NCBI RefSeq assembly: GCF_006345805.1
Contig: NC_043000.1
Coordinates: 123,690,001 to 123,754,000, forward strand
Direction of reading: 5' to 3'
Length of the DNA: 64,000 bases
Source of the DNA: Octopus sinensis
Lineage: Eukaryota
The notes beneath the pieces were generated by a model. The model ran no database searches. It worked only from the letters and a program-made list of their open reading frames with translations, and was not told where the DNA came from. Below are positions 14,483-64,000 of the stretch, one piece after another (position 1 is the first letter of the stretch; the number at the start of each line of letters is the position of its first letter). Position numbers and translations under genes: made by a program.

Positions 14483-14578
14483 CTACGCTGAAGAGAAAAG
14501 AAGTTTGGGTAAGGTAGAATTATTTATATTTATTCTTATGCTTTCCTAAAAACTTGATTTCGAAACGTGCGTCCGTAG
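14483..14578 (+). ncRNA. type I hammerhead ribozyme with extended stem II
   Basis: CTACG 14483-87, CTGAAGA 14488-94, GAAA 14562-65, C-GTGC-GT-C, CGTAG 14574-78; predicted cleavage after 14573. Confidence 0.8.
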
Positions 14579-15739: not shown

Positions 15740-15816
15740 ATGGACAGTCGTATATATTCTATCGAATCATCTCAGAGTGATATGGATATAGATTCGGTGG
15801 TTATTACGAATGATTT
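15740..15816 (+). CDS. SLC30A2: putative first coding exon of the zinc transporter ([25 protein letters not shown]-)
   Basis: aaaaATGG start context, 25 codons + 2 nt, then a perfect GTAAGT donor. Phase 2 matches the 41056 exon. The peptide is not conserved enough to confirm by homology; the link across a 25 kb intron is inferred. Confidence 0.6.
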
Positions 15817-33900: not shown

Positions 33901-36900
33901 AGAGTTACAGAATGGAGTATGGGAAATCTGGGCTACATATGTTTCTTAGTGAGTGGAAATCCAAGTGAGGTGCATACCACTGGCTACTCTTCAGGTCAAG
34001 GATATCTTGATTAGATTAAAGGCTACATTGTCACAAGGAGATACATGTTGATGCAATGTGTAGGAGGCACAGTATGTGAGGGATATATGAATGAGGGGAG
34101 AAATAAGTAAAAGAAGAAGGAAAGAAAGAAGAGAAAGAAAAATACATTCATGAAATGAAATAAAATATAGTGGAGTGAGAGAAAGGAAGAATTGGACTGG
34201 TGGTGGGGGGGGGTCCGTGACACAAAATAGTATTTTTAGCTTAATCATGGAATTCAATAGTGAGATTGACATTTGAAGAGATCATAAAATGGAGGGGGAG
34301 GGGGGAGAAATAGTTTTGGTCATGGGGGACAAAAGAAAATATATATGAATAAAGCAAGGTAGGGCAGGGAGTTTAAGCTAGTGATTTTTATGGTCAAAAG
34401 GCATAAATTGGTACAAGAAAAAAAAAAAAATTAATGTAGTGAAGGTGTATGTTGGCATATGTATTTGTATATTTACGGGTAGGAGGGGGGAGAGAAGAAT
34501 ATTTTAAGTAGTAAAAAAAAATATGGATAGAAAATTGTAATTGACAATTTAGGAATTAAAAGGGGAGAAAAAATATTGCTGGTTTAATACAGTGAGCTTG
34601 CAGAAACATTAGCATGCCGGGCGAAATGCATAGCCGTATGTTGTCTGCCATTACGTTCTGAGTTCAAATTCCGCCGAGGTCGACTTTGCCTGTCATCCTT
34701 TTGGGGTCGATTAAATAAGAACCAGTTACACATTGGAGTCGATATAATCGACTTAATCCATTTGTCTGTCCTTGTTTGTCCCCTCTGTGTTTAGCCCCTT
34801 GTGGGTAGTAAAGAAATAGGTATTGAGGGTGGATGAGTGGGAAAAAGAATATATGGGAGTTATAGGGAGACAAGAACAGGGTGGAGTTGTAATTATTTGT
34901 ATTTCGAGAATAGATTTAGTGCTCAATATTTGCAGGTGAATATTGTACTGCTGCATTCATTGACGGACAGCAAGCCAGGGAGCTGCACCAGATCCTATTG
35001 TCTGCTTTCACATGATTTCTATAACTGGATGCCCTTCCTAACACCAATCACTTTACAGAGTGCACTGGATGCTTTTTATGTGGCACTAGCACTGGTTTTG
35101 TTTACATGGCACCAGCTCATCGGTCTTCGATAAAAGTAAAGAAATCTGCAACCTTCCATCTCAACAAACCACTATTGTTCCTGAAAGTTGTTTTTTTTTA
35201 TATCCACTACAGATTGCCCGAAGCTAACTTTCTTCCTACAGATAATATTATCTGCTGTCAGTAGAGTAGCAAGCTGGCAGAATCATGAGCACACTGGGCA
35301 AGATGCTTTGCAGCATTTCATCCATCTTAACATTCTGAGTTCAAATTCTACTGATGTTGACTCAACATTTCATCCTTGGTGGGGTGGAGGGTTTCAATAA
35401 AATAAGTACCAGTTCAACACTGGGGTTCATGTATTTGACTTTCCCCCCAAATTGCCAGCCTCATGCTAAAATTTGAAATCAATATTATCTGCCGTCATTG
35501 AGTTTTCTTCTAAAAGCTCCAGGATTTGTCTAGGAAGACTGCGCGAAGGAGACAAATGAGAGTAAGAAAATATGTAGATCTGTTGGGGCTATGCCAAAGC
35601 AATGGGTGATAAGCAAGGTGTGATCTCATCAAGGTATGATCCTCTCAAGGCGTGATCCCATCTTGTCTTCTTGTCTTGAGACAGCATTCATCCAGGGCAG
35701 GTTGAGCTGGCTTCATTCATCCTCAATGTTGCATCACTCACAAATGCTGACCAGACCTGGCGATTTGAGGCTAACGGCCGCGTGATCTCCAAGCACTCCT
35801 TATTCCAGCAGTGAACATCGTAGATATGGGGGCCTAGGTTGGGTTCCAGATCAGCTTTGACTGTCATCAGCCAGGTTTTTTGTTGTCCACCACATCACTT
35901 TCGCCAACCCTGAAAGGGAGCTGGGGCAATTGCTTCGTAGATGAATCCTCCTGGTTGACGACGGAGGGCATGACTCAGCCAATGCAGACGTCTCGTTAGG
36001 ATGACTTGTCGGAGGGAGGTGACTTTGCACTAGTGTTGCACCGAATTGTTGGAGACAAAGTGATGCCATCGGACACAAAGGATGTGGCTTAGACAGAGGT
36101 GATTGATGGATTCTAGTTACTTAATATCTTCCACCCTCATCGGCCATGACTCGCTGCCGTAAAGGAGAATCGTTCAAACTAGTGCTTGGTAGATCCGTAC
36201 TATGGTGGTGCGTCGGATCTCAGATCCATCAGGAGGTTTTCAGGTCAGTCCCTCCGTAGTGCTTAAAATATGCTTGGCATTACATGGAAACAGTAAATGG
36301 AAGGCCATCAGATTGGCTGTGGAAGATGCAGAGGTTATTTTAAGGTGGCTCTGGATCTGGAGGCACAAACTCTATAAGGATCAGTACAAGCTGGACACAA
36401 GTTTGAGTTTAATCAACCCCAGACAGGTTGCCTGGGTGAGGGTGACTGATGCTGAAAACCTGAAATATTTAATGACCCCAGGAAATATAACCAATGATAT
36501 GTCCAGGTACATCACTGGATGATATATGACAAGCATAAAAGCTTATTTCATTGATTCACATGTGTATTAATATATGCATATGTTGTTGCTACTACTGTTG
36601 TCCTTGTTATTTTGACCTTGGTCAGCTCCAGTCAAGTAGGCCTACAATCAAAGATGTCTCAGCCATGACTATCGCCTCCTTCTAGATGGTATGATGGAAA
36701 TTGAGGAAGACATAGCTGCTGTTTCTAGCAAGGCATGTAAAAACATAGAAACTCCCTTGTTGCTTTATGTTTGTATGTGCATGTATATAAGCACGTGTGT
36801 GTGTGTGCCTGTGTCTGTCTGTGTATGTGCTTGTGTGTATATAGCAAGCATGCATGACTATGTAAAGCATTGACCTTTTCAGGGAGTGCACGCTACCGTC

Positions 36901-40700: not shown

Positions 40701-43700
40701 CCATAAATTAGCCTAAAATTTTGATGGAAGGTTTTAATTTTAATCATATTAAAACTGGAAGTTTGTATAATAGAACCAGAGGGCAGTCCTAGGAGGGTTT
40801 AGTGTCAAAAATGATAAATGAAGAAAATTTAGTTTGAGTATTTGTTGGCTGTCAAAGTTGATAATCCTCTCCAAAAACTGATTTCTTTAACAACATTTAT
40901 TCTCTATCTGTATTGATTCTTGTCTTCCTTTCAGAAAATCAGATTTGATACCATCTGATTTCTAAAAAGGAAGACAGGAATCTTCCTTTCTAGACTTGAG
41001 TATTTATTGAATAATAATTATTTTTATTTTGTTTCTCTTTTTCTTTTTGTTTCAGTTCTTTGAACAAAAGCCAGGATAGCACCGTGTGTAAGTAAATAAT
41101 TATTAATAATTATTATGTTGGTAGGAAAACAGCAAGCCAGAAAAATTATTGGCTTGCCAGACAAAACACTTATTGATATTTCTTCCTGCTCAGTTCAAAT
41201 TCTGCCGAGGTAAACTTTGCCTTTCATCCCTTTGGAGATCAATAAAATAGAGTATCAGTCAAGCCAATATCATCAATGTATCTCTTCTCAAAACTGTGGG
41301 CATTGACCCTGCAATGGACTAGTGTCCCATTTGGGAGGTATTTTGTGATCCTGACCGCTTATATGCACCATGGAAACCAGGCAACAGGTGTTATGAGTAG
41401 GGTCTAGGGTAAATGGTGCCCAGGGCCAGCATCAAAACTGCACCTCCACCCTCAACCAAAAAGTGGAAACTCGCATAAAAATGGCTTAATTAGAAAATGA
41501 TCTTGGCCAAAATTGCACCCCACCCTTTCAAAGTGATGCCCAGGGCATGTGCTCTGCTTTCCCCACCATAGCTGCTTATGAGTCCTGGTGCTCAAGAAAG
41601 AAAAATCAAAAACATCAGGTTGGTAGGGAAAGGTTGAAGTGATGAATATGTGATGGTGTAAGGAGAGGAGTGAATGAACAAACATGCAAGAGTTTAGCCC
41701 AAGTCAGCTCTGATTAAGAGAGATACAATAAAAAGCATTTCACATGTAACCATTCTCTTTTTTCTTTTTTTTTTTTTTTTTCCAAGGCAGCATTGTCTAG
41801 GATTACATTATACAAAACTATTGAAAAGGTTGCAAGACGCAATGAAAATTTTAGGAAAATAAGATAAGAAAAAAAGTGGAAATTTTTAATGGTGTGTGTG
41901 TTAAATTATAAGGCACCAAAAGAAAATGACTCTCCCCAGATACAACAGAATATGCTTCAACACACGAACTCATATAAAGAATCTTGCAAACCAAATCCAA
42001 AAACGAAATACATTATACAAAATTTCCTTTTTTTAAGAGAGAAGGCTGGGATTCAAAAATATTTGTCTGTTATTCCTAGCAAATCAAGTGATTAAACAGT
42101 TCCTTTTTCATTGAGAATGGTGTCTGAATATGTGAGAGGGTTTTTTTTCTTTTTCCACATCTTCTCTTTCTCTCTCTCTCTCTCTCTCTCGCATCCCCCC
42201 CCTGACAACTCTATCAGTCTCTTCTTTCTAATTTCACCTCTTTCATCTGCTTTTCTTTTTCCCTTTCTATTAAAACTGTTTCTGCATCAATACTACACAA
42301 TTATTTTTATATAACAACAATAATAATAACTAGCAGGACCCATGAGTATTTCACAGAATTAACGGTAAACCTATTGGTACATCTGAAAGCGTAGCCTGTG
42401 TTGTGTCTGTATGGAAAGATAGTCGCTCATCTACTATTCATTGAAAAGTGAAAGAAATTGGAATACGATGATTACTTAATACACTTTATATACTTTATAC
42501 ACAATTCTATAGACTTAAAACACAGCAGTCATAAAATAAATATTCACTTTTATTTCTCCATTTTTCTCATAAACAAAAAAAAAGTATCCCGTACATATAG
42601 GTGCAGGAGTGGCTGTGTGGTAAGTAGCTTGCTTTACCAACCACATGGTTCCGGGTTCAGTCCCACTGCATGACACCTTGGGCAAGTGTTTTCTGCTATA
42701 GCCTCGGGCTGACCAAAGCCTTGTGAGTGGATTTGGTAGACGGAAACTTAAAGAAGCCCACCAGATATATATATATATATGTTTGTGTGTGTGTCTGTGT
42801 TTGTCCCCCCCCTCCGCCCACCATTGCTTGACAACCGATGTTGGCATGTCTACATCCCCGTAACTTAGAGGTTCAGCAAAAGAGACCGACAGAATAAGTA
42901 CTAGGATTACAAAGAATAAGTCCTGGGGTTGATTTGGTCGACTAAAAACTGGTGCCCCAGAATGGCTGCAGTCAAATGACTGAAACAAATAAAAGAATAT
43001 AATACAACCTTTAGTTAAATTTCTTATATCTTTCACATAAATAAGTGTGAATATTTCACAGAATTGCACTAATGTGTTAAGTGATAGGTGATATAAAAAA
43101 CTTAGTTCAATTAAAAAGAAATACACTTTTCACTCTCCAATCACCACCTCCTCCTCCACCACCACCATCATCATCTCCCTCCCCTCTCTCTCTCTCTATC
43201 TCTCTCTCCGCTCTCCCCCTCTTTCTCTCTGTCTCTCTCCCATCTCTCTCTGCCTTTTTTTAACCTGACCATCAGAACATCACCCCTCTGCTAAAATTAT
43301 ACTTATTTAATCAACCCCGAAAGGATGAAAAGCAAAGTCGACCTCGGCAGAATTTGAACTCAGGACATAACAGCAGACAAAATACCGCTAGGCATTTCAC
43401 CCAATGTGCTAACGTTTCTTATTTCTTTACTGCCCACAAGGGGCTACACACAGAGGGGACAAACAAGGACAGACAAACGGATTAAGTCGATTATATCGAC
43501 CCCAGTGTGTAACTGGTACTTATTTAATCAACCCTGAAAGGATGAAAGGCAAAGTCAACCTCGGTGGAATTTGAACTCAGGACATAACAGCAGACAAAAT
43601 ACCACAAGGCATTTCACCCAGTGTGCTAACATTTCTACCAATTCGCTGCCTAAGTAAAATTGTTGTCATCAATACATGTGCCGGTGCCAGATAAAATGCA

Positions 43701-46700
43701 CTCATGCCGGCGCTGCATGAGCACACCCACAATGGTGGCCTGTAAAAAGCATCCAGCCATAGAAACTATGCCACAACAGACAATTGAAGCCTGGCCAGCT
43801 CCTGCCAAACCGTCCAGCCCATGCCAGCATGGAAAACGGACATTAAACAATGATGATGATCTATTACATGTTTGCATGTTGATTTCAGTAGTTTTAATTT
43901 CTTTTTCTTTTTTTTTTTCTCAGATAACCATTGTCATCGTATATCAATAAGCAAGACTGACACAGCAAAAACCAAGAAAACGCTTATTATAGCCAGCTGT
44001 CTATGTCTTTTCTTCATGATTATTGAAATTATTGGTAAGTAACTTTGGAATTTTATTGTTTAGTATCTTCTGGTTTAAAAAATATGAAGATAAGCCCTTA
44101 AATTTCTTGTGTTAGACTCTCCTTTAATTGTTTCAGTCATTGGACTTCGAACTAGTCGGGGCGGGACGACGTTTGGCGTTAGGAAGGGCATCCAGCCGTA
44201 GAAACACTGCCAGATCTGACTAGGCCTTCCGGCTTCACAGACCCCAGTTGAACCGTCCAACCCATGCTAGCATGGAAAACGGACGCTAAACGATGATGAT
44301 TGGACTGTGACTATGCTGGGACACTGCTTTGAAGGGTTTTGGTCAAACAAATTGACCTCAATACTTAGTTTTCTGAAATCTGGTATTTATTTTATCAGTC
44401 TCTTTTGCTAAACATCTAAGTTGTGGGAATGTAAACAAACTAATACCTGTTGCCAAGCTATGTGAAAGGGATGCACACACACGTGTGTGTGTGTGTGTGT
44501 GTGTGTGTATACCATAAATTTATAATCTGGAATCAACTTGTTTAACAATATGCCATAAAACCCTCATAATCAAGAGAATTTTCTAAGTAACCGTGTACCA
44601 TAAATCGAGAGGGATTCACCTGGTTAAAAGCGTATCATATATTTATGGTCAGTGTATTTCCTATTTAAATAAACTTGTATAAACAATTTTAACAACAACA
44701 ACAGCAGCATCAATGACAACATTTGCAGCTACAACCCCTCCCCCATCGCCAATGACCTCCTTATCAACAATTGATACACTTTTACTCTCACTATATTTTT
44801 CTTCTCCTTACTAAACTTTTTATCATTATTATTGCTGTTATTGTTATTCATATTATTAATACCATTATTGCTATTGTTATTCAAATTTATTTTCCTTTTA
44901 TATGGTGCAGAGGGTTTCCTTTCCTTGTTTTTTCTTCCTTTTTTTTTTTTGTATATGTTCGTGTAGCTTAGTGGTTAGGGTGCCAGCACCATGATCGTAA
45001 GATTGTGGTTTCAATTCCTGGACTGGGCTACGTGTTGTGTTCTTGAGCAAAACACTTCATTTCACGTTGCTCCAGTTCACTCAGCTGGCAAAAATGAGTA
45101 ACGCTGCGATGGACTGGCGTCTCGTCCAACTGGGGAACACATATGCCACTGAAACCAGGAAACTGGGCCCATGAGCCTGGCTAGGCTTTAAAAGGGCGCA
45201 GTGGAGGCATGTGGCTTAGTGGTTAGGGTGTCAGCATCATGATCGTAAGATTGTGGTTTCGATTCCTGGACTGGGCGACACGTTGTGTTCTTGAGCAAAA
45301 CACTTCATTTCACGTTGCTCCAGTCCACTCAGCTGGCAAAAATGAGTAATGCTGCAATAGACTGGCGTCACGTCCAGCTGGGGAACACATTTGCCATAGA
45401 AACCGGGAAACCGGGCCCATGAGCCTGGCTAGGCTTTAAAAGGGTGCATTTATTTTATTTATATGTTAAACATACCACACTGCCCAGTTAGACACCACCA
45501 TCTGGCCCAGAGATATCTTTAGCAGAGTTTGCTTCTTTGTTTCCTTTTTTCTTTTTTTCTTTTTCACCTGAACAGCTACAGTGTAGTTGTGAGGGAGCCA
45601 CTAAGTGGGTTTGAGACATTGATTTTTTGCTGTGTATGGGATGTGAAGAGACAGGCCTAAAAGGAGAGACTCAGTCACCTGTGTAGCTGTTTCTCATTGG
45701 TCAGGAGTGAACCACATTTTCTGCCAAGAATAACTGACATAGAACCGGTGAAGTTCTGACCAGTCAGCTGACTTACAGTGCCAAGAGAAAACCAAAGTGT
45801 TTTCCTTGTGGCTGCATTGCTGTTCAGGAATAAATAAATGAATTAAGCTTACAACACCTGGAAATTTTCACTCACTTTCAAAAACTGGGCAGTACCCAGC
45901 AGCACAATTCTTCCAAGGCTACTCTCCAGACTTTTTCATGTATCACACAGCTTTCAAGCTTTCCCACTTTCCAACCTACAGCTGGTCCTTCTGGCCTGTT
46001 ACCAAAAATACCTCCACTAAATTTGTGGAATCCTCTCTTTCTGTCTTCTCATCAACAATAGCTCAGTGGGTTGTACTCCTATGGAAAAAAAAAAAAAGAT
46101 TCCGCCTCTTCTGCCCATTTTCCATACACCTCCTCATTGCATATGTTTGGCCTATCTCCTGATGAGACATTGACTCCAGCATTTGGAGATGTAATACAGC
46201 AGCATCACCAACACATGAGTTGTCATCATCATCATCATTTAACATCTGTTTTCCATGCTAGCATGGGTTGGACGGTTTGAACAGGGTCTGGGAAGCCAGG
46301 AGGCTGCACAAGACTCCAGTCTGTATTTCTACAGCTGGATGCCCTTCCTAATGCCTACCACTCCATGAGTGTAGTGGGTGTGTTTAACGTGCCACCGGCA
46401 CAGGTGCCAGGGGAGGCTAGCAACAGCCACGATGGGTTGGTGCTTCCAGTCAAGCCAGGAAGTGTTTATCATAAATATAATCTCTAGATCTGGAACCAGA
46501 AAATGGAGATGAGATCCAAGTCCTGGTAAACAGCTACTTGTACTGTAAATTTCTCTCAGAACTTATCTCCAAATCTAATCTTACTATGGATGTTGTTGTA
46601 CATTAATGAAACATTCATCTATGCTTAGGTACTTTAAAACTAAAGAGAAAAGACTAAAGACTTCTTCCTGATTAATAAGCACAAGACAGTGATTTCTTAA

Positions 46701-50609: not shown

Positions 50610-53600
50610 CCCCTCCTCCACCCTCCCTATGTGAAAAGTGACATTTTGAAACCATTTGTTCTGATTTACTTATTTATCTATATCATAAATGGAAGTCTAA
50701 CACTCAGCAATTTTTGAAAATACTGTGTCTCACCTGATTGTTATAACAGGCATTCATTTTCATTCATGTCAATCAGTCTCAACTTAGCAATCATATCTAC
50801 TGTACTTACTCATGTATAAGTCACACTTGTGCATAAGTCTCACCCCTTATTTAGTGTTGTTGGTATAAAATTTTTTTCCTTTCATATTCAGACTTGCCCT
50901 ATGTATAAGCTGCCCCCCCCCACCACCACCACCACTGTATAAATTACACACTAGTTTTCAGTTAAAATCAAGTATAAACTTTACCTTTCATCCTTTCGGG
51001 GTCGATAAATTAAGTACCAGTTATGCACTGGGGTCGATATAATCGACTTTATCTGTTTGTTTGTCCCCTCTGTGTTTAGCCCCTTGTGGGTAGCAAAGAA
51101 ATAAGTATAAAACAAGAACACTCAGAGAGTGCAAACCTCCACCAGGGCAACACCAACGTTCTCTCAAAGATTAGCCAGAGATGATTTTTAAAATGAGAAT
51201 ATCTGAGATAAACTCAACTGCTCTCACAAATGAGAATACTAAAAATGAACCTGACTGCTCTTAAAAATTAAGTAAAAAAAAAAACAAGAAAAATAATCCA
51301 GAAACCTTATCTGGTACCAGATCGCTCCCAAAATCTAATCATTTCATGTGAGTCACGAGGCCTAACATCCTTGAAAGTTTCATCTGAATCCATCCAGTGG
51401 TTCTTGAGATATCTTGTCCACTGACAAACAAACACAACTGAAAACAATACCTCCGCCTTCACCAAGGCGGAGGTAATAATGTGACTTCTATATGAGTAAA
51501 TATGGTATATTGTTAACAGCTCTGAAAACAAATTTGTTATTATACTTAGCAAATTACTAAATTATATTTTGGTATAAAGGAGCCCAACATGAGTTTACTA
51601 TGAGAGGGAGAGAATTTGTGTGTGTGTTACTGAAGCTAAAATAATTTCATAGGCTGTTTACTACTTGAGTTTCACATAAATGATCATCAGACAGAAGTGA
51701 GCTTTTGAAGCAATATAATGATTTTAAGATATTGCAATGAAAATCAGTTGGCAGATAATCAAATAAACATTTAAAGCAGATTGAATCAAGAGCAAAGGTA
51801 TGAGCATACTTTGCATTTGATAAACCTCATGTAGGTTAAAATGACCATAGTGGTAAGTCTTAAATAAAAAAAAAAATCAACTTTACATTTTGATGGAGAC
51901 TTTTAATTTAGACCACAATTATACAGTAAGTTTGTATTATAGAACCAAGGGCAGATTCAGGCATTGCATTACATTATACATTTCCTCAGAGTCAATAGAA
52001 ATGTATTGGCTCTGACTCTAACAACCCAATAATTACTTCTGACTCCATGACTCCAATTCTGAATTTTCAGTCTTGTGCAGATCTTTTTAACATGTTAATG
52101 CAGATGTAAAAATTCTACCGAAACTAAAGGTTGTATTTTGTTTCATTTTAGGTGGTTATTTAGCTGACAGTCTTGCAATTATGACAGATGCTGCACACCT
52201 TCTCACAGACTTTGTCAGTTTTCTTATTAGTTTACTCTCAGTTTACTTGGCATCACGACCAGCTACAAAGAAATATAGTTTTGGATGGCACCGGGCAGGT
52301 TAGTATGTGCATTTTACTATTTTCCTTATTTTTTAAATAATTTTTCCAATTTTCTAATTGCCACGTATGACTTATTTCTTTAGGTCGTTAAGTTTATAAA
52401 TCCTTATTTTGAGTATTGAAGAATTAAAAAGGAACATACATGAACCTGAATTATCTAACCGGAAACCTATGTTGTCACATAATCTGCTAGAAATAGCAAC
52501 CAAAATTTCTTCAAATCACACTCAGCTGTCTTGATAAAAAGAGAACATTGAAAACGATGGGAGTGCACAATGGATAATGAACGAAAAAGACAGGATTGCA
52601 TCCAACTGGATCTAAACAACACCTGGAAAGTGTATGATGAAATGCAAGAAAATTTTTAAGATGGAACTATGAAAGTGAGATAGGACACCTCTGAAGGATG
52701 ACTGTGGCCATGCTGTGGCACCGCTTTTAGTTGAGCAAATCGACCCCAGGGCTTATTCTTTGTAAGCCTTGTACTTATTCTATTGGTCTCTTTTACCGAA
52801 CCACTAAGTTACAGGGATGTAAACACACCAGCATCAGTTGTCAAATGATGTTGGGGGACAAACACAGACACACATACATATATATATATGACAGGCTTCT
52901 TTCAGTTTCCGTCTACCAAATCTACTCACAAGGCTTTGGTCAGCCCAAGGCTATAGCAGAAGACACTTGCCCAAGGTGCCACGCAGTGGGACTGAACCCG
53001 GAACCATGTGGTTCATTGCTTTCTCATCGCAGATCTCTCTCCTTAATATATATTGCATGTGTGTGTATATGTGTATGTATGTATGTGTATATATGGATGT
53101 ATGTACCTACCTATCTATTTTAAGTACCCCTCCCCCTTTTACTGAGAATAGGGAGGTACTCCAGAGCCCTTAAAAGACTAAAATCGTCCTCTAAATACCC
53201 ACCTAGCAGTATATTCTTCTTACTATTCAATTTTCCAAATCACTAAAGTAAATCAAACAACTTTGAATTACTCTTCTCACAAATATTTTTATACATTCAT
53301 TCCATTGTTATTCTCTTTTAATGAATCAGTTTTAGCTATTTTGAGACAACACTGACATATTTTAAACATTTTGTTTTGTCTAGCTGTAATTAATCAGTTT
53401 ACTTTAAGACTAGAATCTAGTAACACTTCACCTGTCTAAGGAAACATAATATACTGCCATGTTTTAGTTTCTTGTTGATGTTGTTATTGCTATCAGTGTA
53501 TAATTATAATTGCTTTCTTTTCACCCTGTTTAATATTTGTTGTACAAGTATTGCAGACAGGTTGGAAGGCAGATGGTTAAGCGGTTAAAATATTCAGCTC

Positions 53601-56600
53601 ATGGTCGTAAGGTTGTGAGTTCAATATCCAGCAGCGTGTTGTGGCCTTGATCAAGACACTATATTTCACATTGCTCCAGTCCACTCAGCTGGCAAAAATG
53701 AATTGTACCTGTAATTCAAAGGTCAGCCTTGTCACATTTTGTGTCGGGCTAAATATCCCTGAAAACTACATTAAGAGTACGTGTGTCTGTGCTCAGCCTC
53801 TTGTACATTAATTCCACCTGCAGGCTGTTCCATTGATCAGGTGAACTGGAACCCTCATCGTCATAACCAATGGAGTACCAGTTGTTGCAGACAGGTCTCA
53901 AAGATTTCTCTAATGTCTCCCAAAGTAGGTGCTGAGGAAACCCAAAGTTCCATGAAAAAAATTCTGAGTTTCTGCAAGAGAAAATGTCTTTTGGCACAGC
54001 TGACTGGATATTGAATCTGTTTTGGTAACAGTACTTTTTGGCACTAGAGGCAAACACACACTCACTCACATCTATGCACATATAGAAATATGCACATACA
54101 GATAGAAAGAGAGGAGATATATATATGTGTGTGTGGTTTAATAATTGACATGACTCCCATCACTATCACACATAGATAGGAATAGATAAACATGAAACTC
54201 ATAGATCCAACTTCTCTGCTTTTTTTTTAAAGTTCCTACTATTATTTTTTTCTCTGCACTGATGAGTACGTTGATATATGCAAATTCTAAAATGAATTTA
54301 TATCTATGTGCGAAACAATTGTATGCATGAATAAACTTCTTACAACTTTTTAACATCTTATCTCCTCCATTTTTGACAAATATAATTGGATTTGTAGAAC
54401 TTCATTCCATAAATTAATGATACACTTTATATATATACATATATATATAACAATTTATTTATTGAACATTATTGACATAAACACTTACCCTCTCCTTGTA
54501 CACATAAAAAGGAATGTGCTCACACACAAAAAGGTAGGAAGAGTGAATGAATGAAGTATTAAAACATGTGATACCAAATAAGTTGGCATCAAATCAATGA
54601 TGTCAAATAGGCTAGACCAAAACGTCTCATACCCTTTTATCTATTTGTATTTCAGAAATTCTTGGTGCTCTTGTATCTGTACTCTTTATATGGGTGGTGA
54701 CAGGCATTCTGGTTTACCTAGCTATCTTAAGAGTTATCAGTGAAGATTACGAGATTAAAGCCACTATCATGATAATCACCTCAGCAGCAGGAATCTTCAT
54801 CAATTTACTGTAAGTCATTAGTGTTTCCTTTTCAATTTTTATCTGTTACTTGTTTCAGTCATTGAACTATGGCCATGCTAGGGCAATGCTTTGAAGGGTT
54901 TAATTGAACAAATCGACCCCAGTTATTACTTTTTAAGTCTGATACTTTTGTTGGTCTCTTTTGTGAAAGCTCTAAGTTACAGAGATGTAAATGAACCAGC
55001 TGTCAATGTTCCAGCAGTTAGAGCATTTGGGCTCACAATCATAAGGTAGTGAGTTCGATTCCTGGACTAGGCTGTGTTGTATTCTTGAGCAAGACACTTT
55101 ATGGGCTTCTTTCATTTTCCATCTATCAATCCATGCTCAAGGCCCAGGTCAGCCCAGGGCTATAGCAAAAGACACTTGTCCAAAGTACCTCACAGAGGGA
55201 CTGAACCTGAAACCAATGGTTGAGAAGCAAACTTCTTAACCACACAGCCAAGCCTGCACCAATATATAAACAAAAGGACCATAAAGCCTGGTTACTAATG
55301 ATGAAAACCCTGTTTAAAATGTTATTCATTAATGTGAGTTAGTTCACATTACTCTGTAAGGAGCAAAAAGTTGGTTTCTGGTTTCTCTAACATATATATT
55401 TTGCCCCTGGATGTGATGCTGAAGTCCATTGCAGGATTAGTCATTTCAACCAGCTGAGCAGACTGGAGCAGCATGAAATGAAGTGTTTTGCTCGAGAACA
55501 CACTGCATCACCAGGTCCAGGAACTGAAACCACAATCTTTCAATCATGAATCCAACACCTAAATATTAAAGCACATACCGCCACTATTTATTAATGTAAT
55601 TAAATAAAATTATTGCAAATATGCATTTTTGCTTATATTCTGGCCAAAATAAGTTTAAGGCTGATGATGACAGTTCTATTCCTTCATTAATATATAACAA
55701 TAAAATTATTTTACTTTTTACAGTTTATATAGAATCCTTTTTCTCTTTTGAATCATATAGGCATTATATATCTTTCTACAATTCGACTAATTTTAATGCG
55801 CAATTAATTCAAATGATTAGAAATTGTCGGCAAAATAAGTTAAAGACCATACCAAGATTATGGAAATTAATAAACCAGATGGGAGGTCATATGGTTGGTT
55901 GTACTGCACAGTGTTTTGTTTAATAATTGAGCAGTGTTACACATTAATTCGCTATGGGAAAGCATTGTGGTATCAGCCCAGTTACTAGATCAAAGATTGT
56001 GTTGCTTCATCAGCAAAATATGTCCTTCATGAACATTAATTAGGCTACAGCAAAACGGCTTGTGTTCAAGCATGGAAGCTTTTCCAAGCCACTGGCCAAT
56101 ACAAAGTTCAGCAAAGAATGGGTCCTTCAAAAAAAACAACAGTACAGATCATCATCATCATCATCATCGTCGTCATTTAACATCTGCTTTCCATACTAGC
56201 ATGGGTTGGACAGTTTGACTGTGGGCTGGCAAACCAGATGGCTGCACCAGGCTCCAGTCTTGATTTGGCAGAGTTTCTACAGCTGGATGCCCTTGCTAAT
56301 GCCAGCTGTATATCCAGATTTTACAGTTACCCTGTATATACCAGGCCTATGTCTTATCACTGTTATAACTGTTTAATTACTGTTTAGATACTTGAAAAAA
56401 CTTCTTTTTTTTTCACGTCTTTTTTCTGTTTCCTTGTAGGATTGCACTGGTTTTACACAAACACTCACATGGTCACAGTCATGGGTTAAACCATCACCAT
56501 AATGATGAAGAGAATCGATTACTTGTTGAAACCAGAAGTTATGGCTCCAGTAAAGACCTGTCTGTGGAAGAAGACTTAAATCAGAAAAAACATAAAAACA

Positions 56601-58966
56601 TCAATGTCAAAGCAGCATTTATTCATGTAATAGGAGACATTTTACAGAGTGTGGGAGTACTTATAGCTGCATACATTATATACTTTAAGGTTAGTCTTCC
56701 ACTTTACATTTTGTCAATTGAACTAAGTAGGGGAGGAAAGTAAAGTACTTGAGTTACAAATATAAGAAACAGTCATTCAGAAACAGATTTAGAGTAAAAA
56801 AATATCTAAAGAATATGGGGAAAACATTTTCTCCAACGTATTTGCTAATGTTGGGAACAGCTTTAGCTTTGAAAGTCTGAGACCACTCAGGGAAATTTCG
56901 AATACTTGGATATTTGAATGTCTGACTAAATAGTTTGTGTATGGATTTCTGTGTATGTGTTTCTTATTTCTTTATTGCTCACAAGGGGCTAAACATAGAG
57001 GGGACAAACAAGGACAGACAAACGGATTAAGTTGATTATAGCAACCCCAGTGTGTAACTGGTACTTATTTAATCGACTACGAAAGGATGAAAGGCAAAGT
57101 CAACCTCGGCGGAATTTGAACTCAGAACATAGTGGCAGACAAAATACCTATTTCTCTACTGCCCACAGGGGGCTACACACAGAGGGGACAAACAAGGACA
57201 GACAAACGGATTAAGTTGATTACATCGACCCCAGTGCGTAACTGGTGCTTATTTAATCGACCCCGAAAAGATGAAAGGCAAAGTCGACCTTAGTGGAATT
57301 TGAACTCAGAACATAGCAGCAGACGAAATACTACTAAGCATTTCGCCCAGCATGCTAACGTTTCTGCCAGCTCGCCACCTTAATGTATATGTTTCTGTAT
57401 ATGTATCTGTCTCTTGTGTGTATGAGTATGAAGATGAGTGGCTTAATGATCAAGGTATTCAGTCCATGATCATAAGGTTGTGAGTTCAATTCCCAGCCGT
57501 GCATTGGGTCCTTGAGCAAGACTCTTTATTTCATGTTGCTCCAGTCCACTCAGCTGGCAAAAATGAGTTGTACCAGTAATTCAAAGAACCATCATTGCCA
57601 CATTTTGTGTCGTACAGAAAATCCCTGAGAACTACACTGAGGGTAAACATGTCTGTGGAATGCTCAGCCACTTGTACATTAATTTTACAAACAGGTTGTT
57701 CCATTGATCGGATCAACTGGAATCCTTGTCATCATAACCAACAGAGGCCATTCAAGAATTTGAACCTGAAGATCTCCCCCAAGGTCTGGGGTCTCCCGCC
57801 CCTAAGCCCCAGACCATCACCTAATCAACCTTACTTGTTTTGTTGCTTAACAACAACAACAATAACCAACAGAGTGCCAGTGTATGAGTGTATTTATGCA
57901 TATAAATATTTTCTGTATAGATGTATTGGAGCTTGGTGCAGCCTCCTGGCTTGTCAGTCTTCAGTCAAACCGTCTAACCCATGCCAGCATGGAAAGTAGA
58001 CATTAAATGATGATGATGAATTTAATTACCCAGAATATTATCAGCTTGTTTCAGCTGAGTGAACTACCTTCAAAATTGCTGGATAATTTCTGTAACAATA
58101 ATGTATGAAGACTAGCCATTCCTCATTTATATAATTGAATAATTGGTGTTGCTGTAGCAAATTCACTCATGTTTGTAGTTGTGTGGTAAGAAGTTTGCTT
58201 CCTAACCACATGGTTGTAGGTTCAGTCCCACTGCATGGCACCTTGGACAAGTGTCTTCTACGATAGCCTCAGGCTGACCAAAGCCTAGTGAGCGGATTTG
58301 GTAGATAGAAACTGAAAGAAGCCCATCATGTGTGTGTGTGTTTGTCCCCTATCACTGCTTGACCACTGGTCGTGGTGTGTTTACATCCTCGTAACTTAAC
58401 AGTTTGGCAAAAAGAGACCAATACAACAAGCACCTGGCTTAATAAGAAAAATAAGTACTGGGGTTAATTCATTTGACCAAAATTCTTCAAGGCAGTGCCC
58501 CAGCATGGCCACTGTCTAATGACTGAAACAATTAAGAGGAAAAAGAATGACGTTGTACCTATATGACATGTATATGAGCATTTTAACACCCTCTTTCCCA
58601 TGCTTGCATGGGTCAGATGGAATTTATTGAGGCAGATTTTGCATACTGGATGCCTCTCCTGTTACCAATCCATACCTGTTTCCAAGAAGATAATATTTCT
58701 CCATGGGCAGGCATATTTTCACAGTATATTGGAAGTGAATGATTTTCCTTTATAACAATTACATGCAATGCCAAGACAAAGAGAGAAAGACACACACACA
58801 CACACACACACAAGGGGTTTGTTACAGTTTCCATCTATCAAATCCACTCACTATGTTTTGGTCAACTCTAGTCTATAGTAGAAGGCACTTGCTCAAGGTA
58901 CCCTACTGCAGGACTGAACCAGAGGGCATATGATTTGGAAGCAAACTTCTTAACCACACAGCTAAA

Positions 58967-59035
<69 letters not shown>

Positions 59036-62000
59036 TATTATTATTTTTATTGTATTTTTGTATTTATATTTGTGTAACATCATCTGTTTTTCCGTTCTTA
59101 TTTTCATATACATTCCATGCTTTTTTTCCAAGGAATCTAATGCTCTTAGCTTAGTTTTTCCTTGGGGCTGGCCAGATTGGAGCAATCTCAAGAATAATCA
59201 GCCGAAACTGCGAGGACGATCTGGTTCTTGACTGAAGATAAAAGGCTTCGAATAACCCATCCTTGTTTTCTTTGTATCGTCTATCTGGATGTTTTGTTGT
59301 CTCTTTTTGTATCACCTAGTTGTCCAAATGTTTTGCGTTCTTGTCCCATTTTGTATTTTATATATATATATATATAGTGTGTATTCAATATACTTTTTTC
59401 TCTATCTCTTTGCAGCCGGAATACAAGATAGCTGATCCCATTTGTACATTCATATTCTCAGTGTTTGTGTTTATTTCAACCATTACGATTTTACGTGACA
59501 TAATTAATGTATTAATGGAAGGTAAGTTTCTCTCATTCATTTTCTTCCACTTGTTTTCTGTTTATTTATTTATGGCTGGTCGAAGGAGGAGGAGCAGTGT
59601 CCTTTACAGGATCATCACAGGACCATCAAGACTGATAACTAGCTTAATCATTTTTATGTTGACATCTGCAGGAAAAAAACTCGAGTACGGAGGAAATTGC
59701 AGAGAGGAAATATCCATAAGTGGAAGGGTTGAGTAAGATTGGTTAGAACAGGTCCTAGAACCAAATTCGTAGTTGTTAGTGCATTGGACAAAATATTTTG
59801 TGGTAATTATTCCAACTTCTTGCATTCTAAGCTCAAATTCTGCCAAAGTCAACCTTGCCTTCCATCCTTCCAGGGTCAATAAATAAAGCACCAGTCTAGA
59901 ACATGGACTGATGGAATCATTAGAGGGTTGGATTCGATGTGTTTTGGTATTTATTTCTGCACTTTGCATCCTGAGTTCAAATCCTATCACTTAATCCTAC
60001 CTCTGGTTTCACACCACTGCTTGCATATAGGAAGCCTCTAGCAGAAGTCAATCTGTAAGCAATCAAGCCAGGTTACTAATTTGAGAATATTATCCTCGCG
60101 CCCTTCCACCAGCTTCAGAGACTCTACCAGGGACCATTGGCACTGCAAGCCCCTTCTGACTAAACAATAAACAAAATACGGTAAAAGTGCTTAAAGAAGG
60201 TTGTGGAGTATGACTTTTGGGTCTCAGTCAAGGTGGTTTGCGGCTACCTGATTCACTGGAACATGGTATGAATAATAGCAATGGAATAGACAGACAGAAG
60301 AGACAGTACATCTGTGAGTGAAAGGTTGTAGTGTATTGGTGAGATAAAGAACAAAAACACAATCTTGAAATGAGTAGGAGTATTATATATTAAAAGACCA
60401 AGATCATATATATGTCCTAAAATCCAGTATATCCCAGAAGAGAGACACCATTAAAACTCCAGCATGCTTTTCATTATGTATTTAAGAAGTATATATACTT
60501 CTGCACTGTTCAGATTTATATAATTGCTGGCATATATCATCTGAGATTGTTACAGGAGACAGACTGGATCCTTATAAAGGAAATAATTCATCTCTTATTC
60601 ACTTAATGCTATGAAATCTGAGCTAAGATCCTTAGGAGCACCAATGACTAAAATCCAGCCTTGCTGTTCCAAAGAATCATGACTAAAAAGTTGACAAATT
60701 ACTTAATTCATTAGTCAATTACGTTTGTTACATGGACATGAAGAGACTTGGTAAGGTTACCCAATAATAGGAGAACAGCTTGATGAAAGTGTAGAACTTT
60801 CTAGAATTTGATATACAGCTTGGTCGTTACATTGTCGTATGCTTTTTTACATACAAGGAGTTAGATGCTTGATCAATGAGACAGAAAGATTATAATATAT
60901 TTCTGTCTCATTGTGTCACTAGCACTGGTGACACAAATAAGTACCCAGTATACTCTGTAAAGTGGTTGGTGTTGGAAAGGGCGTCTAACTGTAGAAACCA
61001 TTCCAAAACATACACTGGAGACCAACTCAGTCCTCGGACCTGTCAGATTCTGTTTAACCATCCAGCATGGAAAAACGATTCCAAATGATAATGCCGATGT
61101 ATTCAATTCTCAAATACTATTGGGAAAAATTAAAAACGTAGCCTTTTGTTTGTTTTTCTTTTAATGCTTCCTGTGATTTCTTTGTGTATAATATATAATA
61201 CATGTTACTGTAATTTAAGGCAATTTATTCTTTTTATAATATCTTTTGTGATGTTAATTATGGATACTATAAATGTCTACATTTATTTCATAATTGGTTC
61301 CTACTTCATGGTTGGATGCATGAGTAATTAATAAATGAGAGGATATCCACAAATTACTACAATTAAACGAAAAAAAAACAAAAACACCCATACTGCAACT
61401 GAAAAATAACTGTAAAACAGAAATTCAAACACACACGTTTATATATATATATATCGTTCAGCGTCCGCCTTCCATGCTAGCATGGGTTGGACGGGTCAAC
61501 TGGGGTCTGTGAAGCTGGAAGGCTTCGTCAGGCCCAGTCAGATCTGGCAGTGTTTCTACGGCTGGATGCCCTTCCTAACGCCAACCACTCCACGAGTGTA
61601 GTGGGTGTTTTTTACGTGCCACCTGCACGTATGGATGGACTCATATTAAACTCTGTTGGACTTTTGGATTTTACTCAAAGGATATTGGAATATTACACAT
61701 ATATACCATTATGCCTATAAAACGGATTTAAGAACTCAATACATATCTTGCATCTGTTATCTTTCCTCCACCTCACTCTCTATTTTATATCACATCGAAA
61801 CTAACTGACTTAATTTTTCCTCTCACTCTGTCTCCGATGAAGGGATATTATTATTTAATATCCTAGAAACACCTGTAAGACCTTCTACCCATAAATGCTC
61901 TAATATCTATACAGCCTTGATTTTTTATCTCATTACGCAAAAAATTCATATATACACACACTGATATAGAGCCAACGTTGAACCCTTTATTCGCAATATT

Positions 62001-62137: not shown

Positions 62138-63951
62138 AAAAGGTGAGAGCTAGATATACTCAGTATAGAAAGCATGAAGTAATGCTCAAATGATCTGAAC
62201 TTAAACACTGATAATTTAAACTCTCAAGAAAATACATCATCTCTGAACAACTGCTAAAGTCTTAGAAGACATGAGAACAAGGTCTCATTTCATTACAGTA
62301 ACACAATTACAAATATGTGCTAACATACATATACACACATGCACAAACGTACACACACATGCACAAATGTACTCACACATGCACAAACATACACACATGC
62401 ACAAACGTGCAGACATATGCTCAAACGTGCATACACATACACAAACGTGCATACACATGCACAAACGTGCATACACATGCACAAACATACACACACATGC
62501 ACAACTGCTAGAAATAATAGTCAAGTTTTCATTAATTTTAGACTTTTTTTGTATCAACCTGCTTTTTTTCTTTGTTTTATTTTCTATGTGAGCTGAATAC
62601 ACTCCACTTTATTATGTATGCATGCATTTCTTTCGATTAGTAATTGCTTTCTTTGCAAAATTCAATCCAGTCACTCACAACGTGACAAGTTTCTGTTTTT
62701 AATAAAAATCAAGACAGCTCTCGGAGTCTCTGGCCATCTGGATTGTTTGATAAGTGCAGTTATGTATGTGTGTTTGGATGAAGTTGCTCTTGTATTGTGA
62801 TTGTACATATATTACTTTATTATGTAAGTGTGTATGTATGTGTGTGTGCTTCAATGATGTTTGTTTTTGTGTGTGTGTGTGTGTGCATGTGTGCTTCATT
62901 GATGTTTGTGTGTATGTATATGTCTGTGTGTGTGTATGTATATGTATGTATGTATGTATGTATGTGTATGTATGTATGTTTATGTATGTATGTGTATGTA
63001 TGTTTATGTATGTATGTGTATGTATGTTTATGTATGTATGTGTATGTATGTATGTTTATGTATGTATGTGTATGTATGTATATATATGTATATATATATT
63101 CTATATGTGATTGTATGCATGTGTTCAATTCTGGGGTCTCAAATGGAGAATCCCTAGAATGTTCTGCAGATTTTCACAGTACCTCTTACCAATTGCATTT
63201 GTGTGAATATGAATCAGCTTATTCTGTTCTTCTTTGGTGAACCCCAACATATCTAGGTTTGTGCGTGTGTGTGTGTGCTCACGTGCATGCCTGTGTATTT
63301 AAACCTAAGCATGTATATATATGTTCATATTTATATGTGTGTTTTGTATATATTGATGGACAGGTGTATGCATATTTGTACGAATGCATTGTTGATTGTA
63401 TATTGTGTATGCATTTCTGCTTGTAGGTTTGTATGAGTGTACATGAGAGAATATATATGTGAAATATTTTGTATTGCATACATCAGACAGCTGCAAAATA
63501 AAGTTCTCTTCCTCACAGACAGATCAGCTCTATTAATGATGTTTATAGAAATTTTCTAATGTTAACAGAAATGTACTTGTAAGGCAATTGATTTGATCTG
63601 AGACTGTGTGTCAAATCTCAAAACAATTACAGCATAGAAGACACACATCAGCCATTCAAAAGCACACAGGGATTGTTAAATGAGTTTTTGAATAGCTTAA
63701 TGTGTCTTCCACACTGTACTTGTCTCATGTTAGCTTCATAAATATATTCTATGAAAATAAGCTTTGAACTAAGGTATGAAATTGCAGACATTTTCTTTTC
63801 TTGTCTTCTCACCTAGGTGTTCCAAGAAGCCTCAAGTTTTCACAGGTGAAAGAGTTATTGAATAATGTTCCTGGTGTGAAAGCAATCCATAATTTGAGGA
63901 TGTGGTGTTTGACAACCAATAAAATTGCATTATCTGTCCATTTAGCTGTTG
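15740..63951 (+). CDS. SLC30A2: ZnT2/ZnT3/ZnT8-subfamily zinc transporter (SLC30/CDF), multi-exon, 3' end outside window; join(15740-15816,41056-41087,43924-44034,52152-52298,54656-54809,56440-56689,59416-59521,63817-63951)
   Basis: Hand-spliced exons give one open frame: [337 protein letters not shown]. All introns are GT-AG with matching phases. It has the N-terminal HCH motif, TM2 [10 protein letters not shown]5 HVIGD, the His-rich loop and the cytosolic HNL/SVHL histidines. The symbol marks the closest vertebrate subfamily, not one-to-one orthology. Confidence 0.9.
19174..19330 (-). mobile_element. RTE-tail-type short retroelement ending in (GAT)n
   Basis: Block ccatgctagcatgggttggac...ctacagctggatgcccttccta with a (CAT)n end. 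Siblings at ~24575-24720, 25810-26100, 28010-28480, 33640-33870, 38215-38440, 39825-40020, 43660-43860, 44165-44300, 46225-46445, 49717-50305, 56150-56305, 57925-58020 and 61455-61630. Confidence 0.7.
20365..20642. mobile_element. short retroelement with an inverted partial duplicate and a 12-bp TSD
   Basis: caagacataaaa at 20353-64 and 20643-54; ~20365-20450 is the reverse complement of ~20510-20597; sibling without the inversion at 41818-42008. Confidence 0.75.
20872..21328 (-). mobile_element. near full-length tRNA-derived SINE (major family)
   Basis: Reverse complement of head, body, internal (CA)n and tail seen at 22162-22552. Confidence 0.85.
21670..22024. mobile_element. Tc1-like MITE
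   Basis: TA flanks (21668-69, 22025-26); imperfect TIRs cactaccgtcagaaattaattagcac / gtgctaattactttctgacacaagtg; no coding capacity. Confidence 0.75.
22162..22552 (+). mobile_element. full-length tRNA-derived SINE (major family)
   Basis: Head gcaggagtggctgtgtggtaag...gggttcagttccac, body gcaccttgggcaagtgtcttc, internal (TA)/(TG), tail aaatgactgaaacaagtaaaagag. Further copies near 26470, 27220-27600, 31905-32280, 32790-33640, 37330, 40070, 42602, 44305, 47780, 49015, 52700, 54846, 55100, 58177 and 58800. Confidence 0.88.
22691..23601 (-). mobile_element. degraded, internally deleted mariner/Tc1-family element
   Basis: Imperfect TIRs gagctggtatcaataggttcctggattagtt / actagtctgggaactttttgataccacttc. 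The minus frame gives [13 protein letters not shown]...FQ..W..HW..*....DYFEGD, a mariner transposase C-terminus. Confidence 0.8.
23948..24240 (+). mobile_element. non-autonomous repeat beginning ttattacctcctccaaggaaggaggttatgttttc (Helentron/HINE-like)
   Basis: Terminal palindrome then gtttgtctgtctgtc; inverted partial copy at 23607-23659 and a related end at ~51180-51478(-) with hairpin tacctccgcc/ggcggaggta. The family name is inferred. Confidence 0.55.
28487..29345 (+). mobile_element. Helitron-like repeat (sibling of 5581-6661)
   Basis: A|TCTCTTATTATAAAAGGCAGATTTTATCTGCC 5' end; 28870-29345 matches 5581-6600 inverted, lacking ~5615-5895. Confidence 0.55.
29890..30200 (+). mobile_element. 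LINE ORF2 3'-end remnant (RTE/RTE-X-like)
   Basis: Translation [41 protein letters not shown] resembles the W.D.I.......L.I.....VA.DR..W...L..LPP.P terminus; stops present. Confidence 0.55.
30995..31265. repeat. (TGTA)/(TG) compound microsatellite
   Basis: Direct inspection; source of six overlapping C/V/Y/M or H/T/I/Y ORFs. Confidence 0.95.
35590..36500 (-). mobile_element. 5'-truncated RTE-clade LINE remnant
   Basis: Minus frames give [30 protein letters not shown]...CL.HIL.VRW..FVSN...[15 protein letters not shown]...[21 protein letters not shown]; 16-bp tail unit caaggYRtgatc x3. Confidence 0.82.
37967..38012 (-). ncRNA. minimal type I hammerhead ribozyme motif in a small inverted-repeat element
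   Basis: Minus: AAAACTGT-CTGATGA-ACAGGAACAT-GAAA-CTC-T-GAG-T-T-ACAGTTTT. 8-bp stem I, near-palindromic stem III, GUU triplet; stem II is eroded. Confidence 0.65.
39104..39513. mobile_element. MITE with 29-bp TIRs and a 6-bp TSD
   Basis: cggatctttttggtttgattggcagtttt / aaaactgccgttcaaaccaaaaagatccg; AAGATT at 39098-103 and 39514-19. Confidence 0.85.
41056..41087 (+). CDS. SLC30A2: 32-nt micro-exon of the zinc transporter ([10 protein letters not shown])
   Basis: Long polypyrimidine tract + TTTCAG acceptor and GTAAGT donor. Only one frame is open (phase 2 in, phase 1 out), and it joins the 43924 exon to give V-Y-N-H-C-H. Confidence 0.72.
41818..42008. mobile_element. 191-bp retroposed fragment with a 14-bp TSD
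   Basis: tacattatacaaaa at 41804-17 and 42009-22; body matches ~20463-20642. Confidence 0.8.
42602..42995 (+). mobile_element. full-length tRNA-derived SINE (major family)
   Basis: Same head, body and tail as 22162-22552. Confidence 0.88.
43924..44034 (+). CDS. SLC30A2: zinc transporter exon: HCH motif and TM1
   Basis: ttttttttctcag acceptor, GTAAGT donor; [36 protein letters not shown], the typical ZnT2-type HCH...LIIAS.LC..FM..E segment. Confidence 0.93.
44962..45452 (+). mobile_element. head-to-tail dimer of a tRNA-derived SINE
   Basis: gcttagtggttagggtg...gggcccatgagcctggctaggctttaaaagggYgca repeated with a ~235-bp period. Confidence 0.85.
47561..47781. mobile_element. piggyBac-type MITE
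   Basis: TTAA at 47557-60 and 47782-85; TIRs CCCTTTCATTAC/GTAATGAAAGGG. Confidence 0.9.
52152..52298 (+). CDS. SLC30A2: zinc transporter exon: TM2 with H-x3-D of zinc site A
   Basis: tttcattttag acceptor, GTTAGT donor; [50 protein letters not shown]. Confidence 0.96.
54255..54327 (+). ncRNA. type I hammerhead ribozyme, intact core, sense strand of a zinc-transporter intron
   Basis: TGCA-CTGATGA(54259-65)-46-nt stem II hairpin (~18 bp, G-C first pair)-GAAA(54312-15)-C-AATT-GT-A-TGCA; palindrome ACAATTGT; GUA triplet; predicted cleavage after 54323. Confidence 0.78.
54656..54809 (+). CDS. SLC30A2: zinc transporter exon: TM3-TM4
   Basis: tatttcag acceptor, GTAAGT donor; [52 protein letters not shown]. 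Confidence 0.96.
56440..56689 (+). CDS. SLC30A2: zinc transporter exon: His-rich loop and TM5 (HVIGD)
   Basis: ttccttgtag acceptor, GTTAGT donor; [20 protein letters not shown]...[31 protein letters not shown]. Confidence 0.96.
56962..57375 (-). mobile_element. tandem dimer of the ggcggcgag-family SINE
   Basis: Two head-to-tail copies of the 3' two-thirds with a single head at ~57345-57375. Confidence 0.85.
59416..59521 (+). CDS. SLC30A2: zinc transporter exon: TM6
   Basis: ctctttgcag acceptor, GTAAGT donor; [36 protein letters not shown] (inside ORF 59320-59736). Confidence 0.96.
61830..61881 (+). ncRNA. type I hammerhead-like motif with U4C substitution
   Basis: GTCT-CCGATGA-A-GGGATATTA-TTATT-TAATATCCT-A-GAAA-C-ACCT-GT-A-AGAC; 4-bp stem I, 9-bp stem II, GUA triplet. 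Confidence 0.55.
62320..63090. repeat. ACAC/TGCA-type minisatellite and (TGTA)n microsatellite
   Basis: Repeats of acacatgcacaaac at 62330-62505 and TATG-based repeats at 62870-63090; source of many spurious ORFs. Confidence 0.9.
63817..63951 (+). CDS. SLC30A2: zinc transporter exon: cytosolic C-terminal domain (part)
   Basis: cttctcacctag acceptor, GTAAGT donor; [45 protein letters not shown]. Confidence 0.95.
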
Positions 63952-64000
63952 GTAAGTGAAGCTGGCTTTTAAAATTACTGTTTTTATTTTTACTGTTGCC

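Follow-up and report, generated by a model that had tools for sequence, protein, structure and literature searches.

The intronic hammerhead ribozymes HH9 and HH10 are ultraconserved across amniotes and combine stable helices and loop–loop contacts with efficient cleavage as monomers. Contacts between loop 1 and loop 2 are needed for hammerhead activity at physiological Mg2+. In metazoan type I hammerheads, helix III is reduced to 1–2 bp with a small palindromic loop, with the consequence that the single motif is inactive and the tandem dimer is active (PMC4209133; PMC7229834). The hammerheads of Penelope-like elements (PLE) have a short helix I (4–5 bp) and an enlarged helix II, and their 'massive and widespread occurrence' has been described (Cervera & de la Pena 2014, PMC4209133). 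No cleavage was detectable with single motifs of the metazoan or PLE type (PMC4209133; PMC7229834). Similarly, the hammerheads of satellite 2 and HHR_Amex show low activity as monomers and cleave efficiently only as dimers (PMC7229834). In the present work a candidate hammerhead was analysed in a 64,000-nt stretch of the Octopus sinensis genome (GCF_006345805.1, contig NC_043000.1, positions 123,690,001 to 123,754,000 of the forward strand), which is referred to below as the window. The motif lies on the sense strand of a 2.35-kb intron of an SLC30A2-like zinc-transporter gene, between the exons encoding transmembrane segments 2 and 3 (TM2, TM3). This is where a sequence-only reading of the stretch had placed it, and the exon map obtained by tblastn agrees. 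We give about even chances to the reading that a retroelement with a hammerhead left the motif stranded here as a remnant, which now evolves neutrally and would be essentially inert as a monomer.

Direct reading of positions 54255–54327 (+) gave the sequence UGCA-CUGAUGA-(46-nt helix II)-GAAA-C-AAUU-G-UA/UGCA, where the slash indicates the predicted cleavage site (coordinates in Table 1). All 13 core positions are canonical (among them C3 U4 G5 A6 N7 G8 A9, G12 A13 A14 and H17), as the sequence-only reading had stated from the CUGAUGA, GAAA (54312–54315) and GUA segments, and the closing pairs A15.1-U16.1 and G10.1-C11.1 are both present. The topology is that of a type I hammerhead, open at helix I. 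Helix II is built of three paired blocks of 6, 6 and 5 bp; a U.U mismatch separates the first two, a 4-nt UGCA bulge the second and third, and the loop UAAAAU caps the last. With the helix II count set at 17 bp, the earlier description of stems I and II, of the palindromic stem III and of the position of AATAAA was confirmed. Helix III and loop 3 together form a perfect palindrome, ACAAUUGU.

The closest match to this anatomy was found among the hammerheads of PLE and of non-LTR (long terminal repeat) retrozymes (PMC4209133; PMC7229834; bioRxiv 10.64898/2026.07.22.740005). The octopus motif shares with them the type I topology, a short helix I and a large helix II, a helix III of 1–2 bp whose small palindromic loop makes a double hammerhead possible, the pairs G10.1-C11.1 and A15.1-U16.1, and an AT-rich setting beside (TA)n microsatellites. 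Unlike them, it is single and is part of neither a pseudo-LTR nor a 150–450-bp tandem repeat. Its helix II (17 bp, 46 nt) is much longer than the 6–8 bp described for these hammerheads, A9 is directly followed by G10.1, whereas an unpaired nucleotide typically separates them in the minimal hammerheads (min-HHRs) of PLE, and the cleavage triplet is GUA instead of the usual GUC. The newt and salamander satellite 2 and the axolotl HHR_Amex hammerheads have in common with the motif a very weak helix III and a palindromic tetraloop (PMC7229834); however, they occur in tens of thousands of tandem copies with a partner in cis and loop 1–loop 2 contacts, whereas the octopus motif has neither a tandem partner nor a loop 1. 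With the amniote hammerheads HH9 and HH10 (RF02275, RF02277) the likeness is one of position, in sense orientation within an intron of a protein-coding gene. The motif matches neither model, is not conserved even within Octopus and has no stable helix III; the analogy with amniote intronic hammerheads drawn in the sequence-only reading fails on the lack of an HH9 or HH10 match and of deep conservation. If real, the motif would be a new, atypical member of a well-known kind of hammerhead.

The folding of the motif RNA (86 nt) was predicted at 37 °C. In these model calculations, the pair probability of the monomer was about 0.99 for helix II, 0.2–0.5 for helix I and about 0.02 for helix III. The hammerhead fold was predicted at −12.5 kcal/mol, which is 2.3 kcal/mol above the minimum free energy (MFE) structure (−14.8 kcal/mol), and the latter would pair part of the core elsewhere. 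Cofolding of two copies of the motif returned a predicted MFE structure that corresponds to the classic double hammerhead, in which helix III is intermolecular and 8 bp long. The ensemble free energy predicted for the self-dimer was about −5.5 to −6.0 kcal/mol, corresponding to a dissociation constant (Kd) of about 60–140 µM. Such a Kd would exceed by orders of magnitude the nuclear concentration that a single intron could plausibly reach. The suggestion in the sequence-only reading that with only 2 bp in helix III cleavage may be slow or depend on a dimer is in agreement with the published metazoan type I hammerheads (PMC4209133).

A competent but neutral ribozyme could be envisaged, cleaving few pre-mRNAs, or cleaving only in vitro at high Mg2+ or RNA concentration, and having no selected function. 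The 13 canonical core positions with A15.1-U16.1 and G10.1-C11.1, together with the textbook double hammerhead and its 8-bp helix III as dimer MFE structure, are what would be expected of it, and a precedent is given by HHR_Amex2, whose helix III likewise has 2 bp capped by a tetraloop and whose monomer self-cleaved to 22% within 1 h in vitro (PMC7229834). In contrast, helix I of the octopus motif has 4 bp and no loop for loop 1–loop 2 contacts at physiological Mg2+ (PMC4209133), helix III is predicted to form with a probability of about 0.02, and the competing fold of lower energy would sequester part of the core. For these reasons, a neutral but active ribozyme is regarded as unlikely.

In the reading that we prefer, a hammerhead-carrying retroelement, of the Penelope-like or non-LTR retrozyme lineage, would have inserted long ago into an intronic (TA)n tract. 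The RNA of the remaining motif would have a firm helix II, a part-time helix I and a helix III that almost never forms. A productive fold would require a second identical motif to make the 8-bp intermolecular helix III, and pairing between separate transcripts would be far too weak at cellular concentrations. Considering that no partner is found nearby and that pairing in trans would be weak, cleavage of the pre-mRNA before splicing is expected to be negligible and no regulation of the zinc transporter would follow. Its support comes from the architecture shared with metazoan and PLE hammerheads, from the young hammerhead-bearing element of the same window, likewise set in (TA)n, from the weak predicted folding and from the comparison between species. 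That the motif descends from a retroelement and is inactive in vivo is what we infer from these observations.

Partner copies and ties to retroelements were searched for in about 290 kb of cephalopod DNA, made up of the window and four loci (L001–L004). The 287-nt unit which carries the candidate (54138–54424) is flanked by (TA)n-type microsatellites. Neither a second match to the motif nor a repeat of its region turned up in the window and L001–L004, and no open reading frame (ORF) for a reverse transcriptase or a GIY-YIG domain adjoins the motif. An exact-pattern scan of metagenome contigs gave 0 matches, in a collection that is not a source of octopus DNA. Several points weigh against a retroelement remnant. 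The 287-nt unit has no paralogue in the ~290 kb, where blastn (word size 7) and nhmmer returned its orthologues only, and it shows no similarity to the hammerhead-bearing element at 13216–14870 described below or to the relative of that element at 8871–9637. The origin of the motif from a repeat family is putative. Furthermore, the core is fully intact in three Octopus species and the motif is slightly, if not significantly, better conserved than its flanks. Finally, the thermodynamic figures on which its inertness as a monomer is based are model predictions at 37 °C.

In order to compare the locus between species, orthologous loci were retrieved via the encoded protein from O. vulgaris (L004), O. 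bimaculoides (L001) and Argonauta hians (L002). A fourth locus (L003) is the window's own, on chromosome CM016862.1 of GCA_006345805.1, and is 100% identical over 3,001 nt (window 52000–55000). Over the same segment, which covers the intron and the flanking exons, the identity to the window was 98.6% for O. vulgaris and about 92% for O. bimaculoides. In A. hians the two flanking exons matched but the intron was unalignable; it has about 840 bp and no counterpart of the motif. The motif of O. vulgaris is the same as that of O. sinensis, and this species is too close to O. sinensis to inform on the conservation of the helices. Just 3' of the motif, an 11-nt deletion in O. vulgaris changes AATAAA to AATAAC.

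O. bimaculoides retains TGCA-CTGATGA-helix II-GAAAC-GATT-GTA with four substitutions. Three of them are in helix II, where two give a U.U mismatch and one changes U-G to U-A, and the fourth is in loop 3, so that helix III and loop 3 read ACGAUUGU in this species. None of the four is compensatory and no covariation supports the helices. Right after GUA the O. bimaculoides sequence continues with CACAUAAAAAGG, and CACA stands where UGCA, the 3' strand of helix I, would be. This results from a 180-nt segment (54324–54504) which carries the helix I 3' strand and AATAAA and is missing in O. bimaculoides; therefore, helix I cannot form there. The left edge of the segment is within 1 nt of the predicted cleavage site, and 17 nt at 54496–54512 match L001:50286–50302 exactly, the site of the indel being at about L001:50290. 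The difference may be either an insertion with target-site duplication or a microhomology deletion; a search of the protein collection with the TM3-exon peptide for a further octopod to serve as outgroup found none. A 22-nt duplication-like insert (54513–54534) adjoins the 180-nt indel.

Between O. sinensis and O. bimaculoides the motif is identical at 64 of 68 positions (94.1%), compared to 89–92% in the flanking intron. The four substitutions observed stand against 5–7 expected, and the excess of conservation is not significant. As far as these alignments indicate, the motif evolves at a neutral level, and O. bimaculoides keeps its transporter gene intact without a complete motif, whichever the direction of the 180-nt change. 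The sequence-only reading had held that a motif absent or decayed in related species would speak against it; the motif was found incomplete in O. bimaculoides, which goes part of the way in this direction.

These data bear on the idea that the intronic hammerhead is functional: competing with splicing, it would cut the pre-mRNA of the zinc transporter, possibly in a dimer- or metal-dependent manner, and feed a nearby poly(A) signal. Its position on the sense strand of the intron about 330 nt before the 3' splice site, the intact core and the identity of the motif in O. sinensis and O. vulgaris are in line with such a function, though the two genomes are 98.6% identical in the intron anyway. 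Against it, the 3' strand of helix I is missing in O. bimaculoides, no substitution is compensatory and the motif is conserved no better than neutral sequence; O. vulgaris has lost AATAAA; the predicted dimer Kd is around 1e-4 M and a partner in cis is absent; and no Rfam hammerhead family is matched, including the amniote intronic HH9 and HH10. Moreover, frog retrozymes are depleted from introns (bioRxiv 10.64898/2026.07.22.740005), which fits selection against active intragenic ribozymes and not their recruitment. Such a function is considered highly improbable. The use of AATAAA as a poly(A) signal was rejected, this hexamer being frequent (85 occurrences on the + strand of the window, about 1 per 753 nt) and not kept in O. 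vulgaris. The concentration-dependent brake on the gene proposed in the sequence-only reading also found no support, given the Kd of 60–140 µM, the lack of a second copy in the window or the related loci and the restriction of the complete motif to O. sinensis and O. vulgaris. It is scarcely credible that the 180-nt indel, by placing UGCA after the cleavage site, completed a lineage-specific ribozyme in O. sinensis and O. vulgaris that would cleave the SLC30A2-like pre-mRNA co-transcriptionally and tune zinc-transporter output. If true, molluscs would have their first regulatory intronic hammerhead, and the case would illustrate how an indel can complete a ribozyme. With an active motif recruited by the host, hammerheads embedded in genes would be known from cephalopods as well as amniotes, and self-cleavage would be tied to the expression of a metal transporter. 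The evidence points the opposite way: the motif resembles the many solitary, decaying or fortuitous minimal hammerheads known across metazoan genomes, and it serves as a caution that a perfect core is no evidence of function.

The relation of the motif to known families was addressed with Rfam cmscan. At the gathering threshold, none of the hammerhead models (type I, II, III, HH9 and HH10) matched the motif in a search of the whole window; the 34 bits required by RF00163 were not reached. At E<=10, searches with 301 nt and with 87 nt around the motif returned no hammerhead and only chance matches to small nucleolar and long non-coding RNAs. As a control, two other hammerheads of the window with longer helix II inserts (63–65 nt) were detected by RF00163 at 21.2 and 19.1 bits. 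The negative result for the motif is meaningful because these control hammerheads were detected despite their longer inserts. The fold z-score of the motif RNA was −1.6 relative to shuffled sequences.

The chance expectation was estimated with a descriptor of helices and core in a loose and a strict form, using dinucleotide-shuffled or simulated windows as null. With the loose form, 4 matches were obtained in the window versus 0.13 per dinucleotide-shuffled window. The strict form demanded CTGANGAG..CGAAA (CUGANGAG and CGAAA), A15.1-U16.1, H17 and helices of at least 4/4/2 bp. The motif was its sole match in the window, at an expectation of about 0.002–0.003 per shuffled or simulated window, which amounts to about 100 chance matches per 2.7-Gb genome.

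An AU-rich intronic hairpin flanked by CUGAUGAG, CGAAAC..GUA and a 4-nt palindrome (UGCA) could have arisen in this way with no ribozyme ancestry. The some 100 strict matches expected per genome, with many windows screened, speak in favour of coincidence, as do the single-copy state of the locus in the ~290 kb searched, the lack of any Rfam hammerhead at E<=10 with a z-score of −1.6, and the absence of covariation. Also, helix I is merely the self-complementary UGCA and may stem from the lineage-specific 180-nt indel. On the other side, the expectation per window is only 0.002–0.003, and this genome demonstrably has hammerhead-bearing repeats. In addition, the palindromic ACAAUUGU, C15.2-G16.2 and the 17-bp helix II lie outside the descriptor and would, as a rough estimate, lower the expectation to about one per genome. 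A chance origin is disfavoured on these sequence features, but it is the main rival of the retroelement reading and more probable than any activity of the motif. A weak descriptor match at 35874–35789 (−) (CUGG-CUGAUGA-...-GAAU...) was treated as chance, since it has GAAU in place of GAAA and fits the loose rate; the same sequence is present in O. vulgaris.

The two control hammerheads belong to an element at 13216–14870. This composite of 1.65 kb is assembled from partial copies of a ~0.6-kb unit, both tandem and inverted, lies within a (TA)n tract and is devoid of ORFs. One of the inverted copies, at about 13905–14010, is 5'-truncated. Its hammerheads read CUACG-CUGAAGA-G..63-65 nt..C-GAAAC-GUGC-GUC-CGUAG. 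O. vulgaris has an empty site at the orthologous position (L004:1-130), and the O. bimaculoides locus also lacks the element; the element is therefore a very recent, O. sinensis-specific insertion, and such elements have been mobile since the split of O. sinensis and O. vulgaris. In its arrangement the element resembles a non-autonomous insertion of the Penelope-like or retrozyme type, and PLE insertions arranged in this way were described by Craig et al. (PMC8557442). The many single-base indels among the internal copies may be errors of long-read assembly.

Like the candidate, the hammerheads of this element are of type I, with a long AU-rich helix II and a 2-bp helix III with tetraloop (ACGUGCGU), and the element has a (TA)n setting, presumably inside the transcription unit of the same gene. 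In contrast, there is no similarity outside the core, and the element is a very young multi-copy composite, while the candidate predates the split of O. sinensis and O. bimaculoides. A heterodimer of the candidate with the sense-strand hammerhead at 14483–14578 was considered and rejected: the loop 3 palindromes ACAAUUGU and ACGUGCGU are not complementary, therefore the two cannot pair. If the annotated gene range (L003:1001-69080) is right, the hammerhead at 14483–14578, which has the better score, is also in sense orientation within this zinc-transporter transcription unit, in the intron upstream of coding exon 1, and it would then be a stronger candidate for self-cleavage of the pre-mRNA than the intronic motif.

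Other repeats were noticed in the window. A diverged relative (60–70% identity) of its non-hammerhead part is present at 8871–9637 in both orientations, with no detectable hammerhead segment. An interspersed repeat of ~190 nt, presumably a SINE-like (short interspersed nuclear element) family, occurs at 12974–13190 and at least 8 other sites in both orientations (e.g. 1371–1543, 25172–25383, 34636–34823, 43420–43602 and 56965–57331), with 81–87% identity between copies. One of the copies adjoins the left flank of the element.

The exons of the SLC30A2-like gene were mapped by six-frame reading and by tblastn with the O. sinensis 'zinc transporter 2-like' protein (P0124), and splice sites were read from the sequence. 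They are listed in Table 1 with the other features.

Table 1. Coordinates in the window of the hammerhead motif, the neighbouring indel, the hammerheads of the 13216–14870 element and the exons of the SLC30A2-like gene.
Feature	Position	Strand	Remarks
Helix I, 5' strand (UGCA)	54255..54258	+	pairs with 54324–54327; kept in O. vulgaris and O. bimaculoides
Core C3-A9 (CUGAUGA)	54259..54265	+	same in three Octopus species
Helix II, 46-nt AU-rich imperfect hairpin	54266..54311	+	closed by G10.1-C11.1
Core G12 A13 A14	54312..54314	+	kept in all three Octopus species
Helix III and loop 3 (ACAAUUGU)	54315..54322	+	2 bp (A15.1-U16.1, C15.2-G16.2), palindromic tetraloop AAUU
Predicted cleavage site A17 / U1.1	54323..54324	+	from hammerhead numbering
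Helix I, 3' strand (UGCA)	54324..54327	+	in O. sinensis and O. vulgaris only
AATAAA hexamer	54330..54335	+	judged incidental
180-nt segment missing in O. bimaculoides	54324..54504	+	alignments; TTGTA direct repeat at bounds
Type I hammerhead	14483-14578	+	RF00163, 19.1 bits
Type I hammerhead	13506-13407	−	RF00163, 21.2 bits
Coding exon 1, SLC30A2-like gene	15740-15814	+	
TM1 exon, SLC30A2-like gene	43929-44036	+	
TM2 exon (upstream of motif), SLC30A2-like gene	52145-52297	+	tblastn, P0124 aa 72-122
TM3/TM4 exon (downstream of motif), SLC30A2-like gene	54652-54813	+	tblastn
Next exon after TM3/TM4, SLC30A2-like gene	56441-56689	+	
Further exon, SLC30A2-like gene	59413-59523	+	
Further exon, SLC30A2-like gene	63816-63956	+	

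Two other reading frames of the window were noted. At 53–979, a long low-complexity 'ORF' rich in His, Pro, Ser and Thr derives from microsatellite arrays of the CAT/CAC/CCT type and is not a gene. At 7167–7604 (+), an ORF of 145 aa was found, the C-terminal part of which (…LDYIYLLFRMSLFEIITAETNRYAKRKQ…) may resemble the N-terminal region of piggyBac-type transposases.

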